From NCBI GenBank assembly GCA_001179505.1, contig CDMY01000897.1, positions 1-64,000 on the forward strand: a DNA stretch of 64,000 nt, in the 5' to 3' direction. This document shows positions 1 through 7,498 of the stretch, one piece after another. Each line of letters starts with the position of its first letter. Positions within the stretch are counted from its first letter, which is position 1. The position numbers and the translations under genes were made by a program. The notes under the pieces are model-generated. The model was not told the DNA's origin and did no database searches. It saw only the letters and a list, made by a program, of their open reading frames with translations. Source of the DNA: Vitrella brassicaformis CCMP3155. Lineage: Eukaryota > Protista > Chromerida.

Positions 1-615
1 GGGGGGACGGCCCTGGGGGTGCATATCGACGTCGTCAGGCGCCGCGCATCGGGCAGCGGCAAGCGGGGCAGGGAGACCGGGTGGCGGCACTGGGGCCGTC
101 TCTCGAGGGGAGTCGTCCGAACTCGTCGCAGCCCAACGGCAAGGCCGCCCGGCCGCTGTCCGCTGTACCAGGTGACGGCGGCTTTCCTTTCGGCCGCCTC
201 TGCGGCGCTTGGGGCGCTGCTGCTGGGAGGGGGTGGCCGGAATGGGGGTCCCGGGAAGGCGGGTGTTGTGCCAACGGCGAGAGCGCCGAAGCCCGTCGGG
301 GCCGCTGCCGAGTAGCCACGGTGCGTACGCATCTTGGATAGCGTCGACGGCTGAGGACGGCAGCTCCAAGGCGGTGGCGAACTCGTCGATGCCGGAGCGC
401 AGGAAGGCCACGGCTGATGCGCCAGGGTCTGCCTCCCAGGTCTCCATGGCCCATTGGTGGAAGCCGCTGGCGATGTCGAGGGGGATGCCAGTGTCCGCCA
501 ATGCCGCAAGGGCGGCAGAGGATGCGTTGCGTGGGGCGGGGAGGGGTGAGGAATCATCCGCCGGGTAGGGCGGGGAGGAGGGCAGGGGGCCCATGGGCGG
601 GAGGGCGGACGCCAT
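1..615 (-). CDS. Possible 5' part of a hypothetical Pro/Ala-rich protein, open to the window edge
   Basis: Stop-free minus frame from ATG 615 to base 1 (MASALPPMGPLPSSPPYPADDSS...AVAFLRSGIDEFATALELPSSAVDAIQDAY...). It is absent from the ORF track because it has no stop in the window. Below ~310 other frames look equally protein-like, so it may be frameshifted or degenerate. Confidence 0.25.
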   Translation of the reverse strand, partial: MASALPPMGPLPSSPPYPADDSSPLPAPRNASSAALAALADTGIPLDIASGFHQWAMETWEADPGASAVAFLRSGIDEFATALELPSSAVDAIQDAYAPWLLGSGPDGLRRSRRWHNTRLPGTPIPATPSQQQRPKRRRGGRKESRRHLVQRTAAGRPCRWAATSSDDSPRETAPVPPPGLPAPLAAARCAAPDDVDMHPQGRPP

Positions 616-770
616 GGGGTCGGCGCCGTCTCCCGTGGGAGCCTCGAGCGCGTTCAGTGGGCAGCGCAGGTCTACCCGAATGTGTCAGGCATCAGATGCG
701 GAACGGGTTCAGTTCCCGAGGAAGACTCTTTTGGCAGCGACGGCCGTCGAACAGCCCGAGCGAAGCGAGG

Positions 771-888
771 GCACCTGTGAGTCAATCAGCGATGAACGCA
801 CCTGTGAGTCAATCAGCGAGTGAACGCACTCCGTTCAGCGCGGAGTTCGGGGGTGAGAGGAAGATCTGCACTCCGTTCAATGCGGAGT
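771..888. promoter_or_regulatory. Repeated motif cluster between divergent ORFs: two 22-bp direct repeats and two palindromes
   Basis: GCACCTGTGAGTCAATCAGCGA at 771-792 and 798-819, each containing TGAGTCA. ACTCCG-N7-CGGAGT at 828-846 and 870-888. The regulatory role is inferred from position only. Confidence 0.35.
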
Positions 889-1046
889 TGCACCAATATC
901 TATATTTCGCATCCTTCAATTCATTCCATCCGCAATCTCAAAGCCAAGCTCGCATGGAGTTGCTGGGCGAAAGGAAACACTGGACGGTGCAACAGCCTGG
1001 GCACAGGTGTAGGAAAGAGCATCATTCCGTTTTGCATCTGTGACAA

Positions 1047-3765
1047 ATGGCGAGGGAAACGTCTCTGCTGAGCGTGAAAGTTCTTTATTTCCTGCAAGCA
1101 GGGTCTGCCGCCTGCTTCTTCCGGTTCTCGGTGGTCTTCTTCAACTACATCGGGCTGCCCGCACACTTCATCGGCATCCTCGAGTCCATGGGACCTCTCG
1201 TCGGCTTCGTCGGCGGCCTGGTCTGGAGCGGCGTGGCGGACTACCTAGGGTGAGCGAAGGGGAGGAGAGGAGAGATGACGCCCCGCAATGAGGCAGTAGT
1301 GCGGATCTGATCTGGATCTCTTGCGTATGCGTGTGTGTGTGCGTGTGTGTCTGTGTTGCCTCAGTGACAGGAAGCTTGTGATAGTGTGCACCAATATCTG
1401 TGCGGTGAGTGCGTGGACGTCCCTGCTGCTGCCCTTCATCCACAGCCACTTCGCCCTCACATTCCTCACCGTATTCATCGCCACCTCATGCGGCTCGGCC
1501 TACGGACCCCTCGCTGACTCCCTCGTACTCGAGGCCATCAAGCGGCACAGACTTAAGCAGCTGACCGAAGACGAAACCGCCACTGACGCAGACAGGACGC
1601 AGTACATCAGCAGCAGCAGCAGCGGCATCAGCCCGGAGGAGTCCACCACGTCTGTGGAGAGGGTGACGCTGCAGCTGGAGGATGGTGTGAGTGGTGGTGT
1701 GGCCGACAAGAGGCGGCAGCTGGGTGAGCCTTTGCTGCTGGCGAATGGGGAGGTGACCCCGATGTCGCGGTATCCATCCTTGAGCCGCTTCATCAGCCGG
1801 CGGTTCAGCTGGAGGGGACAGCAGTTCCGCACCGCTGCAAGGAAGGCGTCATATGGCCACCAGAGGTGCGGTGCGAATGTATGGTCGGTGGCTGCAGCGT
1901 GGGATGATTTTGGTTGTCGGCGTGTGTTGTGTTGTGTTATGTTGTCCATGGTGTGTCTGGTCTGTCTGGTCTGTTTGTTGCAGGTTGTGGGGTGCGGTGG
2001 GGTGGGGGATGTTTTCGCTGCTGACCGGTCTGCTGGTGGACCACCTGGGCATCCCCACCATGTTCGCACTCTACGCCACCGGGCAGGTCCTCGTCATATT
2101 GGTCAGCCAGCCAAACAAACTGACAACGCAGGCATCGAAATCATCTGCCTGGTGCGTTGCTCGACTACTGATGCTGTCTGTTTTGTTTCCCCCAGGTGCT
2201 CGTGACATCCTTCCCGTCGCCGCCTAAGAAGGTCCGCCCACTAGTGGCTCCGCAGAACCAGCAGACACATCCACCTGAACCGACTGAACCATCACAAGCC
2301 GCCCCCGAGCACCCCCTCAGGAAGCGCTCGGAGTCGCTCTCTCTCGGCGGCGCGTACAGCCCCTTCCCAATGTGTGAGGTCTGCCTGGCCCCCTGTGCAC
2401 ACCAACACATGCCGCAGCAAGATGAAGGAACCCAGACGTCAGCCGGGAGCAACGTCGAGGAGGTGAGGTGGCAGAACGGCGGTTTCCTGGCGTCGACCGG
2501 CAACAGTGACAACAACAGTGTGTGGCCTGAGGCGGTGGATATGCGTGGCCTGCGGCCGATGCCGAGCACCTGCACCGCCTGCAGGGATGAGAAGGAGGCG
2601 ACGGTGCTGATCAACGGGTGGCGGGACAGACAGGGGAGGGCTCATGGGGATGGGGACGGCACGGGGAGAGAAAGCGAGCCTAAGCCGGTGACGCCATCGG
2701 CCGCGAGCGGCTCGCCGCGGTCCCCCAGGTCACTCAAGCGGCTGCTGAGATTCGAGATCATCTGGTGAGTGGAGATGAGGGATGCATGGACACACCACAC
2801 CACACCACACCACATGGCCCATTTATTCCATGTCTGTCTGTACGTCTGTCTGTCTCCCTGCCTGCCTGCCTACGATTGATGTGTGAGTGCAGGTTGCTGT
2901 TGAATCTGTTCATGTTTGGGTTTTGCATGAGCTTGGTTGAGCAGTACCTCTTTCTCTACCTGGTGCAGTACTTCCATGCCCCCACCTTCCTACTGGGGCT
3001 GTCCATCTTCATCATGACCGTCGCAGAGCTGCCTTTCTTCTACTACGCTGAGGACGTTGTCAGGCTGCTCAAGCCACAGGTGGGTGCGTCTGGTCTGTGA
3101 GGCTCAGGGAGGGAGGGAGGGAGGGAGGGAGGGGAGAGGGAAACCGTTAAGTGAGAATATCGTGAACGACTCTGGCGTGTTTGGTTTGTGGCTGGCGCGC
3201 ACTGCAGGGCGTGTTGACGCTGGCTCACGTGACGTACGCCGTGCGTGTCTTCATCTACACTCTCATACCCAAATCAAACCCATGGTCAGTGAGTGAAGAA
3301 GCAAGAGAGAACGCACGCACTTGCGCGCGCGTCGAATGGTCATGCTCTCTCTTTTCAGGTTGGTGTTGCTGTGTGAGCCGGCTCACGGCATCACGTTTGC
3401 GGCCATGTGGTGCACGGCCGTCTCGTACGCCAACCAGCTGGCACCCACCGGGCTCGAAACACTCATGCAGGGGTTCGTGGGCGGCTTCTACCGAAACCTC
3501 GGACAGGTAAGTAAACGAGTGGTGAAAATGGGACGGACAGAGAAGGAAGAGTGGCGCCGCCTCGCTCATTCTCTCTGCATCCATGTGTGTGTGTGCATGT
3601 CAGGGTCTTGGTTGCATCGTGTGGGGAGCGTTGTGGAAGACGGTGGGGGCTGACGTGCTGTACCGCTCGGCGGCTACATTTGTGCTGCTGTGGTCGGTGG
3701 CATTCAACCTGGTCCCATACCTCAGGAACAAGCGGCGGCGGCACATTGAGGCAGACCGTCACTGA
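1047..3765 (+). CDS. MFS transporter, MFSD6/MFS_1_like family (about 8 exons)
   Basis: Spliced peptides include MARETSLLSVKVLYFL...WSGVADYLG, YGHQRLWGAVGWG (joined across the 1866-1983 intron), LFLYLVQYF...AELPFFYY, EPAHGITFAAMW and LGCIVWGALW. Canonical GT-AG junctions keep the frame. A long hydrophilic loop lies at 2198-2765. Confidence 0.85.
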
Positions 3766-4527
3766 GTGAGGTCGCTGCGCCTGCCAGCCAGAAACGGCAG
3801 CGCGTCCGTGTGTCTGTCTTGTCTGTGTGTACAGAAAGCTAGATGGCATGGCATGGGATGGGACGGGATGATTCCATCCATCCACACGCAATCAATCAAT
3901 TATAGCGTTTTTGCTCTTCCCGCTGCGGTGCGGCAGTGTCTGCGAGAGGAGGGGCTGTCTTTGTGTGAGTGGGCCGGGCCTGGCCTGGCTGGGCTGTCTG
4001 TCGGTCTTTGCATTGTTTGCCTGTCTGTCTGTCTGCCTTTGAAATGGTGGGTGGCTGTCTTGCGCCATACAGTGAACACAATGGCTTGTTTTGGCGTTCA
4101 TACGTGGGTTTCATTCCCGTGCTGTGTTGTGCCTGTTGATAGCTAGAGGTGGTTTGTCGCTCTTGTGTGCGTGAGGCGAGCCTCCTCACCCCCTGCTTAA
4201 TTGCGCGCAACACAAGGAAGCGTGTTGCCAGTCGCCATCGGTGCTACGCGCGAAGCGAAATTCAGAGTCGACAACCAACGATGCCCGAGAGAGAAGCGAA
4301 AACGGTCAAAATTGTACAGTGTAAGCCTGGTAGGTGATTTCGCAGCAAAGTTTACATTTGTTTACATTGGCAAAGCTATGTATTTAGGCGTTAGAGCGTT
4401 ATTGATCTTCCTTGGATTGTCTTCTGTTGACGTCCTGCTTTGCGTCGCGCGCCATCCTACTCCCCTCCTGCTTTCTTATCCTTGACTTCTCTTCTGTGCC
4501 TTCTCCTCCCTCCCTGAGCCCGCCAAA

Positions 4528-6946
4528 ATGCGTGTTCTTCTCGTCGCTGTGGCCCTCCTCGCGGCATTCCTCCCTGCCCTGGCAACACCTGCCCTGCAAG
4601 GGCAGAGCGGCCGGTTTTTGGCCGGCGACGACGTGAAGGTTGGAAACGTCATCTTCCTCCACGTAAGTAGACAGACACACACGCAGAGAGGCACGCGGCG
4701 CATGAGAGCTCTCGTATCTGTCTGTCTGTCTGTCTGTCTGTGTCTGTGTGTGTGTCTGTGTGTCTGTGTGTCTGTGTGTCTGTTTCATTCAGGCTTGCGG
4801 CACTGGCATGGTAAGCAAGCCCGTCCTTTCGCTTGCTTTGGTCGGTCTCGTGTGTGTGATCTCGTCTGTCTGTCTGTCTGTCTGTGTCTGTGTGTACGCG
4901 TGTGCACGGCAGAACACCTTGAATCTCGGGCGCACGTACTGGGCGGGCCCCGACGACCGCGAGAAGTGGAACTGGGACCAGATACCCGAGATGGCAGTGT
5001 ACAGAGCCCATATGAAGGACCAGCTCGTCGGCACCCACAACGGCGGCGCCACCATTCATGCCTTCGGTGAAACCGCACCACACAACACGAAGAGACACAC
5101 CCATATGACGTGCGTCCTGTCATGATGTCATTACTCAGGTTACAAAGTGGACGCCGACTCCTTCGGCCAAGACGGCGACCGCTCCATCAAGGCTCTGAGC
5201 GGCTTCCCTGGATCAATCTTGCGCGAGGCGCAGCACCATGGCATGCCCACGGCCCTGACGAACGACGGCAGTCTGGCTGTGCCCGGGACTGGAAGCTTCA
5301 CGTCAGAGGTCGACCCGGAGGCTCGGACCTCGGCAGAAATCGTTCGACAGATCGTCGACGGTCGCCCGGGCTTCGAGAATAAAGATTTTCCCCCTGAGGT
5401 GCTGCTGGCGGGCGGAGAGTCCCTCTTCCTTCCCGAGGGGACGCCCGAGTGCGGTGAGAAGATTACCCATGACTGTTTCGTCCATAAGGACCCGGTGAGG
5501 GACACGGTGACAGAGGGACACGGTGACACAGAGCGCGTCTCTGTGACCACACATCCTTATCTTTCAGGTATCCGGCGCGGGGCCCCAACGTACCGACGGG
5601 CGCAACCTCATCCGCGATCTCGCCAACAGAGGGTATACCGTCATCCGCACTCGCCAGGAGTTCGACGAGCTCCTGCACCGCATTGAGTCGGACCCTCACT
5701 TCTTTCCCAAGGTATGGAGGGGTGAGGGGGACAGACTATTTTTGACGTTATGGTGAGCTGGCTTCGCGCTCGTCGTCACGACACATGCCATGCTTGTTTC
5801 TGCCTGCGTGATCGACTCGTTCAGGTGCTGGGGCTCTTTGCGCGCGGCGACACTTTCAACGGCGAGACCGAGGAGCAGTTGATCGAGGATGGACTGGTGA
5901 TCGAGGAGAGAGCCGGCACCAAGGAGGGCCGCCTCCTCCTCTTCGGCGGTCGACCGGGCACGAGGTCCTTCAACCCGCCGTCCGCTGCAGAGCTGGGCAA
6001 GATGGCTCTTTTGCTCATCAAGCGCTTCAGCAATGCCGCCGGCAAGCCTTTCTTCGCCGCGCTTGAGTTGGAGAGCACAGATGACTTCCCTAACATCGCT
6101 AACGTAAGGCTTACGACAGTGACAATGGCAATCGACACTCGTATATAGTGCGCACGCCATTGTGTGGCTGTCTGGTGCTGCTGATGTCATGATGCAGGGC
6201 ATCGGAACGCTCAATGCCGTCAAGCGGGCGGATGACCTCATCGGCGTGGTGCGCGACTTCTTTGAGAACGTGGACCCACATTCGTTCGGCATCCTCCCCC
6301 CTGTCAAGTAAGCCAGAGAGGAGGGGGATGGGGCTGGGGGTGGGGAAGGAGCCGCGAAAGCGGCCAACGTCTGGTGTGCTGTGTGTGTGCCATGCGCGCA
6401 GTGACGCTGGTGGCCCCCAGTTGTTCATCCCAATCGTTGACGACGAGGGCAAGGTCACGATTACTGGCGGCAACCCGAGCCTCGAAAACGAGGTACAGAC
6501 TCTCTGTGTGTGTGTCGTGAGGGTGGCGGCACATGACCATCGCTGATTTTTTCTATTTCACAGCCTGTCGGGATCTTCCCACTTGACGGCTTTGAGGGCC
6601 GCAACACCCTTCCCTTCGAGTCGGCGCCAAACGCCTTCGGCTTCATCCAGAAATTTGCCATTGGTAAGTGGAGTGAGACATGCACATACGCATTCCTTGA
6701 ATGCAAGGCAGCTCTGACTGTTTCTCTGGGGTGTATTTGTTTTACTGTGCAGGCTACGTTGGCACTGAGGACGTCCATGGTGCGATTTTGGCTCGTGCAG
6801 GGGGCATCAATGCACACCTGCTGCGCGACAAGTTCTCCGTGTTTTTCGACAACACGGATGTCTACCGCCTCATGTACTTGTCGCTCTTCGGCAAATTCCT
6901 CCCTGAGTCCTACGGCCAGAATGCCCCCGACCGGGACGGCCATTAG
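4528..6946 (+). CDS. Secreted alkaline-phosphatase (PhoA)-fold protein with substituted active-site residues, 10 exons, about 526 aa
   Basis: Exons 4528-4662, 4793-4810, 4913-5066, 5139-5494, 5568-5711, 5825-6103, 6198-6307, 6402-6492, 6564-6663 and 6753-6946 total 1581 nt in one open frame. Signal peptide MRVLLVAVALLAAFLPALA. AP-like motifs: NVIFLHACGTG, GGATIHAFGYK, GRNLIRDLANRGYTV, LGLFA, FFAALELESTDD, DNTDVYRLMYLSLFG. Confidence 0.88.
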
Positions 6947-7002: not shown

Positions 7003-7498
7003 ACTGTTGCTGCCTCGTATGGAGCGCTGTGTGGGGAGCGTTGCATACGGGGTTTTGCACAGCGAGTGAAGGGGATGGTTTCGTACGAACGCATGTGAGT
7101 GAGAAGGGGTGTACGTGCCACTGGCTCGACAGCAAATGAGGGGCGTCACTGTCGCTGTTCTCGACAGCAAGCGCTGTTTTCGACGGCAAGTGAGGGGCGT
7201 CACTGTTGCTGTCTCGTGGTGCATGGAGCGGTGTGTGGGGGGGCGTTGCACACGGGGCTTGACAGCGAGTGAAGGAGATGTTTTCGTACGAGTGCATGCG
7301 AGTGAGAAGGGGTGTACGTGGCTTGACGGCGAGTGAGGGGCGTCACTGTCGCTGTCCTCGACAGCAATGCTGTCCTCGATGGCAAGTGAGGGGCGTCACT
7401 GTTGCTGTCTCGGTGCATGGAGAGTTGTGTGAGGGAGCGTCGCACACGGGGCTTGACAGTGAGTGAAGGAGAATATGTTTCGTACGAGTGCATGTGAG
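7003..7498. repeat. Degenerate tandem repeat, about 2.5 copies of a ~197-bp unit with internal sub-repeats
   Basis: Units start ACTGTTGCTG(C/T)CTCG at 7003, 7202 and 7398. Shared blocks include GAGTGAAGG(G/A)GA, TTTCGTACGA and GAGTGAGAAGGGGTGTACGTG. TGAGGGGCGTCACTGT(C/T)GCTGT occurs twice per full unit. Confidence 0.85.

Follow-up and report, generated by a model that had tools for sequence, protein, structure and literature searches.

Alkaline phosphatase is the textbook model of two-metal catalysis and of active-site evolution within a superfamily. Enzymes of this family rely on a metal-activated serine, a phospho-serine intermediate and two neighbouring metals, of which the one termed M2 activates the nucleophile, and they work as dimers. 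This text describes a gene of the chromerid Vitrella brassicaformis CCMP3155 located at positions 4528-6946 (+) of a 64,000-nucleotide stretch of contig CDMY01000897.1 (the window), referred to here as the rewired copy to distinguish it from a second gene of the same genome, the sister copy CEM15790.1. An earlier note, based on the letters of the window, had proposed that the gene encodes an intact secreted PhoA-fold protein with exchanged nucleophile and metal ligands, and that this is not a conventional phosphatase. The comparisons presented below argue for that view: the changed residues are the most invariant of the family, and the gene is intact, expressed, spliced and held under purifying selection. 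Its product is probably either a 'dead' enzyme that has taken on another role or an enzyme whose chemistry is new.

The gene is a member of a histidine-poor and mostly bacterial branch of the Alk_phosphatase family (PF00245), characterized by the motifs HPDGTG, GTSNGGAT, EPGT, ESTDN..N and AADSDAGG. Its relatives there, named 'alkaline phosphatase' in their sources, occur in Chloroflexota, Cyanobacteria, Bacteroidota and Gammaproteobacteria. Throughout the subfamily Asn, Ser and Asp occupy the slots of PhoA His331, His370 and His412, which leaves no histidine metal ligands, and its members may use hard metals such as Ca or Mg. The rewired copy resembles this branch in identity (~62% to the nearest members), domain length, scaffold and non-His residues at the three slots; it differs in that all surveyed members retain the equivalents of Asp51, Ser102 and Asp369 and in that the bacterial genes are intronless. 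Some cyanobacterial members of the branch contain two tandem domains. The existence of a large branch without histidine ligands bears on zinc-independent phosphorus scavenging.

With the alkaline phosphatases of Escherichia coli (PhoA), Vibrio and mammals (1ALK, 3E2D, 1ZEB) the rewired copy has in common the fold, as predicted from the sister copy, and the equivalents of Glu322 and Asp327, but unlike these enzymes it lacks the Ser nucleophile, Asp51, Asp369 and all His ligands. A further point of comparison is PhoAaty, an atypical form known from dinoflagellates, haptophytes and Synechococcus, which is likewise a marine-algal alkaline phosphatase found in alveolates among others and which is described as dissimilar in sequence to classical PhoA and as lacking a defined HMM (PMC11098088; PMC4548154). 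Identity with PhoAaty was rejected, as the family of the rewired copy scores 60-148 bits against PF00245 and is set apart from PhoAaty by the description of the latter. Literature searches returned nothing relevant on Vitrella alkaline phosphatase or on pseudoenzymes of the alkaline phosphatase superfamily.

Active-site replacements and gene structure

Statements on the rewired copy rest on exon-wise analyses, with the sister copy as proxy. Equivalences to PhoA were taken from the alignment of a family profile to solved alkaline phosphatases and are given in sister-copy numbering; this alignment reproduces all four of the PhoA motif alignments that the earlier note had made by eye. Conservation was surveyed in 237 domain instances of relatives (96 after removing those with >80% identity) aligned to the family HMM. 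The sites are as follows.

Asp51 position (sister D43): Asp in 236/236 family domains, Cys in the rewired copy; sister FLHPDGTGL, rewired FLH/ACGTGM (slash, exon junction)
Ser102 nucleophile position (sister S89): Ser in 237/237, His in the rewired copy; sister LVGTSNGGAT, rewired LVGTHNGGAT
Asp153/His153 slot, the Glu of EPGT (sister E146): Glu in 236/237, Val in the rewired copy; sister LAEPGT, rewired LAVPGT
Arg166 equivalent (sister R159): 100% conserved in the family, 13 residues past the Asp153 slot as in PhoA; in the rewired copy the Arg is 1-2 positions out of register
Glu322-His331 region (sister E344 = Glu322, D349 = Asp327, N350 = Lys328 slot, N353 = His331 slot): sister EIESTDNLPN, rewired ELESTDDFPN
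Asp369 position, the Asp of AADS (sister D391): Asp in 235/237, Val in the rewired copy
His370 slot, the Ser of AADS (sister S392): Ser in 235/237, Asn in the rewired copy; Asp369/His370 region, sister ILAADSDGG, rewired ILPPVNDAGG
His412 slot (sister D466, by spacing only): sister GTDDVGGG, rewired GTEDVHGA

Both exceptions at AADS are frameshifted entries, and all 99 representatives covering these motifs carry the family residues. The bacterial subfamily of IHPDGTG/TSNGGAT type that the earlier note mentioned as keeping Asp and Ser does exist, and these two residues are invariant in it. Against this background the rewired copy has exchanged the M2-activated nucleophile and all three M2 (Zn2) ligand positions (Asp51/Asp369/His370 being Cys/Val/Asn instead of the Asp/Asp/Ser of the subfamily), together with two contributors to M3. 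The codons reported previously for Cys (TGC 4796-4798) and His (CAC 5036-5038) are indeed present. Each of these two exchanges takes two bases (GAC to TGC, TCC to CAC), in agreement with the minimum stated at the time; the other three replacements take one base each.

Not every departure from PhoA is peculiar to this gene. The Val and Asn reported at Asp369/His370 are both found, and Asp to Val and Ser to Asn are specific to the rewired copy, but the loss of His370 itself is subfamily-wide, with Ser in the family. Likewise, the Asn at the His331 slot is present as described but belongs, with the loss of His412, to the subfamily as a whole. The M1 (Zn1) equivalents at the Asp327, His331 and His412 slots are Asp, Asn and Asp, which is the subfamily consensus and unlike PhoA (His412 placed by spacing, by eye), and the Glu322 equivalent is retained. 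On these alignments four features are new with respect to the earlier note: Glu to Val at the Asp153 slot, Asn (the family residue) to Asp at the Lys328 slot, the shifted Arg166 equivalent, which goes with a one-residue insertion, and a canonical sister copy. Instead of the subfamily signature PDG, TS(N/H)GGAT, EPGT and AADS the rewired copy has ACG, THNGGAT, VPGT and PPVN, and its scaffold is kept at 123 of the 139 columns that are >=95% conserved in relatives.

A new His (CAT 6776-6778) stands two residues past the Asp of the His412 slot, where GTEDVHGA corresponds to GT.DVAGG in the family. A formylglycine/sulfatase reading of the Cys was considered and rejected: the residue is at the Asp51 position, not that of the nucleophile, and lies in the motif H-A-C-G-T-G-M, not C-x-P-x-R.

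The coding sequence (1581 nt, 526 codons plus stop) is distributed over 10 exons on the + strand and every intron is GT-AG; the gene is intact, as had been described. The exons are listed below.

Exon 1, 4528..4662, + strand: start codon, signal-peptide-like N-terminus and start of the alkaline phosphatase domain (GNVIFLH); covered by the transcript contigs of runs X1 and X7
Exon 2, 4793..4810, + strand: 18-nt microexon encoding ACGTGM (family PDGTG), with TGC 4796-4798 for Cys at the Asp51 (M2/M3 ligand) position
Exon 3, 4913..5066, + strand: LVGT-H-NGGAT, with CAC 5036-5038 for His at the Ser102 nucleophile position
Exon 4, 5139..5494, + strand: LAVPGT, with GTG 5279-5281 for Val replacing the invariant Glu of EPGT (Asp153/His153 slot); the region of the Arg166 equivalent reads EVDPEARTS, with the one-residue insertion
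Exon 5, 5568..5711, + strand: conserved segment R.DGRNL...G(Y/W).V.RTR; the sole exon with a Pfam Alk_phosphatase match of its own, a weak one (E 0.032)
Exon 6, 5825..6103, + strand: ELESTDDFPNIAN; equivalents of Glu322, Asp327 and the His331-slot Asn retained, Lys328-slot Asn changed to Asp
Exon 7, 6198..6307, + strand: ends in GILPPV and the AA of a split codon, with GTC 6303-6305 for Val at the Asp369 position
Exon 8, 6402..6492, + strand: T completes the split codon (AAT) for Asn at the His370 slot, where the family has Ser; DAGGPQ follows
Exon 9, 6564..6663, + strand: conserved segment LDG.EGR...F
Exon 10, 6753..6946, + strand: GTEDVHGA with the His412-slot Asp retained (equivalence by spacing only), C-terminal helix FDNTDVYR, stop

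Judged by eye, the N-terminus is signal-peptide-like (MR/basic start, hydrophobic run, ALA/TP), and the conserved domain starts ~15 residues past its end, which leaves no space for a transit peptide. Microexon 2 is flanked by introns 1 and 2 (window 4663-4912), both of which are filled with (TCTG)n/(TG)n microsatellite and differ in length between the window and a metagenome orthologue.

Family placement, sister copy and origin

Scanned exon by exon with Pfam and NCBIfam, the rewired copy is nearly blank, the exon 5 match being the single one. Because the short exon pieces are too weak for such scans, family placement was drawn from relatives. The sister copy, whose protein is P0216, carries PF00245, and it is the full-length bacterial relatives that give the Alk_phosphatase scores cited above. 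When a profile of exon 4 built from both copies was searched against 1.84 billion representative proteins, only 99 relatives were found. A family profile of 30 sequences matched the solved alkaline phosphatases of Vibrio (3E2D/7QOW, E 2e-39) and E. coli (1ALK, E 1.6e-33). Judged from these sequence comparisons, the rewired copy is a descendant of the PhoA/alkaline phosphatase family, within its histidine-poor subfamily. Word-index protein searches matched the sister copy and did not find the full-length protein of the rewired copy.

The tandem-domain organization occurs in many cyanobacterial members (P0100-P0215, ~1050 aa), in which both histidine-poor domains have intact Asp/Ser motifs. Some of these proteins also contain hemolysin-type Ca-binding repeats (PF00353). 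The JGI label for the cyanobacterial proteins is 'glycerophosphoryl diester phosphodiesterase'.

In the genome (72.7 Mb, 1064 contigs) one other locus resembles the rewired copy, on the minus strand of contig C470 (genome G000; L003, 3414-5759). Its product corresponds to the complete MMETSP transcript protein P0216 (523 aa), which clusters with CEM15790.1 / UniRef A0A0G4FNG2, 'alkaline phosphatase' of V. brassicaformis CCMP3155, on a 70,209-bp contig. This sister copy is expressed (spliced transcript L010), also has a signal-peptide-like N-terminus, and at each of the five sites changed in the rewired copy retains the family residue (Asp, Ser, Glu, Asp, Ser). The two are 67.5% identical, summed over the exons compared. 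Eight of the nine intron positions of the rewired copy are common to the sister copy, which lacks intron 1 and consequently has no microexon; intron 1 occurs in the rewired copy only. In Foldseek, the sister copy as modelled by AlphaFold2 (pLDDT 92.6, pTM 0.91) matches E. coli alkaline phosphatase with E 8e-23, probability 1.0 and TM 0.58/0.68; for 1ED8/1ALK the values are E ~1e-22 and TM 0.6/0.69. The PhoA fold is thus seen in the model of the sister copy, as a proxy for the rewired copy.

Sequence change has been unequal between the two genes. Summed over exons, identity to the nearest Chloroflexota proteins is ~62% for the rewired copy and ~67% for the sister copy. In relative-rate comparisons with the nearest outgroups the rewired copy has 72-78 changes of its own versus 28-39 in the sister copy (p <= 0.002). 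Of the 139 conserved columns, counted over 129 bacterial relatives, 13 are changed in the rewired copy only and 4 in the sister copy only. The relative-rate test showed no asymmetry with distant outgroups; the asymmetry is clear once the nearest outgroups are used and fragments are placed properly. High identity to bacteria, together with the lack of any other eukaryote in the top 120 matches of each search, suggests that the pair is of bacterial origin and that intron gain (9-10 spliceosomal introns) and duplication followed.

Transcripts, orthologue and selection

The rewired copy is transcribed and spliced as modelled. Spliced transcript contigs occur in public runs X1 and X7, which come from two studies, and seven GT..AG joints in them fit introns 3-9 exactly. 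Between exon 1 and exon 3 these contigs have 16 letters plus 2 ambiguous ones, 18 in all, matching microexon 2 in length. None of the runs showed a differing letter, and the His codon at 5036-5038 is covered by X1, X6 and X7; runs X5 and X6, being unspliced, look genomic.

A metagenome contig of 3170 bp from an independent assembly (L009, ENA ERZ893784) contains a diverged orthologue over exons 1-7 and runs collinear with the window from position 3111 on. Its exons are 91-98% identical to those of the rewired copy, its introns 52-90% identical, with indels. The microexon differs by one synonymous change (ACT to ACG) and has identical splice sites. L009 retains TGC (Cys), CAC (His) and both Val residues, so that the Cys and His, whose recurrence in orthologues the earlier note had put forward as a check, are both kept in a diverged relative. 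A metagenome scan with exon 10 gave no further orthologue, only bacterial relatives with <=68% identity.

Nei-Gojobori counts between the rewired copy and L009, summed exon by exon over 397 codons, gave dS 0.101 and dN 0.026, a ratio of 0.255 (0.19 without the signal-peptide exon; Fisher p ~1e-6). Intron divergence is 0.092, near dS. The rewired copy is held under purifying selection in its present form. For the sister copy the sole extra record (L010) is a same-strain transcript with 100% identity, which yields no control dN/dS. Three observations that had been named beforehand as grounds for giving up the proposal, namely an assembly error, dN/dS near 1 and lack of expression, did not materialise: the codons recur in L009, dN/dS is 0.25 and spliced transcripts exist.

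Possible roles of the altered site

The two Vitrella genes constitute a naturally matched pair within a single organism: one has the invariant site, whereas the other has had its nucleophile and one whole metal site exchanged, yet has been kept by selection. A comparison of the two proteins would tell whether such a site comes to serve in binding, to regulate the active copy or to catalyse a new reaction. Because the rewired copy has none of the M2 apparatus, the canonical Ser/two-metal mechanism is very probably excluded for it. The reading we favour, at roughly even chances, is that of a secreted non-catalytic 'pseudo-phosphatase' whose retained pocket and M1 site serve in binding or which pairs with the active sister. 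The metal-activated phospho-serine intermediate would no longer form; the surviving pocket and M1 metal site may bind phosphate, a phosphoester or a metal. Alternatively, the protein might join the active sister copy in a heterodimer and modulate its activity.

Several points weigh against this reading. The loss of phosphatase activity is one that we infer, and no characterised member of the histidine-poor subfamily was found in the literature. Orthologue coverage is confined to exons 1-7. The RNA check of exons 2-3 proposed in the earlier note bore out the 18-letter length of the microexon and the His codon, but gave no letters for the Cys codon, positions 4709-4905 being skipped as repeat in the read comparison. 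Cys and His are classic soft-metal ligands, and their gain by two base changes each looks more like selection than random decay. Moreover, purifying selection fits new chemistry as well as it fits a binding role.

The last two points lead to a neo-functionalised enzyme, a tentative and distinctly less probable alternative, in which the old M2 would have turned into a soft-metal site (Cys, His, Asn; Zn, Fe or Cu) or, next to an M1 metal that is retained, into a catalytic pair of Cys and His. The reaction would be a different one, for instance direct water attack, a thiol-based intermediate or another substrate class. It is favoured by the nature of the key replacements, which are exactly Cys and His, by their maintenance in L009, by the retained M1 equivalents and Glu322, by the further new His of exon 10 and by the strong purifying selection. 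The Val residues at the Asp369 position and the Asp153 slot, on the other hand, remove ligands instead of swapping them, the Arg166 equivalent has been shifted by an insertion, and two codons conserved in one orthologue at dS 0.1 are weak evidence. That the nucleophile-activating site has become a Cys/His(/Asn) soft-metal site or Cys-His pair, with the other metal site kept and a chemistry new to the family, is placed a shade lower still, as a doubtful but serious possibility.

An ordinary phosphatase working through another nucleophile appears unlikely. The candidates would be the neighbouring Thr (GT-H-N), in the manner of the Thr nucleophile of NPP/PafA-type enzymes, or a phospho-histidine intermediate. 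The Thr does stand directly before the His and is conserved in the family, and the pocket scaffold and M1 site are retained; however, all active relatives have the same Thr alongside an invariant Ser nucleophile, so it is no mark of a switch, and M2, the nucleophile-activating metal, is left with none of its three ligands. As to phospho-histidine, we know of no His nucleophile in the alkaline phosphatase superfamily. Hardly credible, finally, is an artefact or a dying gene, i.e., a mistake of assembly or annotation at the microexon, or a pseudogene so recent that its frame is still open. The 18-nt exon with the Cys does have (TCTG)n repeats on either side and lies in the stretch skipped in the read comparison. 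Against an error stand the exactly 18 letters at this place in two transcript contigs from two studies and the identical microexon and splice sites of an independent metagenome assembly; against decay stand a dN/dS of 0.19-0.25 (p ~1e-6) and ten exons that are all open and spliced. This explanation is largely refuted already.

Upstream of the rewired copy, on the same strand, lies a neighbour at window ~400-4100 (+) in which the open reading frame 2765-3100 matches Pfam MFS_1_like (E 6.5e-07); by this match it is probably a multi-exon gene for an MFS-type transporter. Just downstream of the stop codon, window 7003-7498 is occupied by a 196-bp tandem repeat (2.5 copies, 84% matches).

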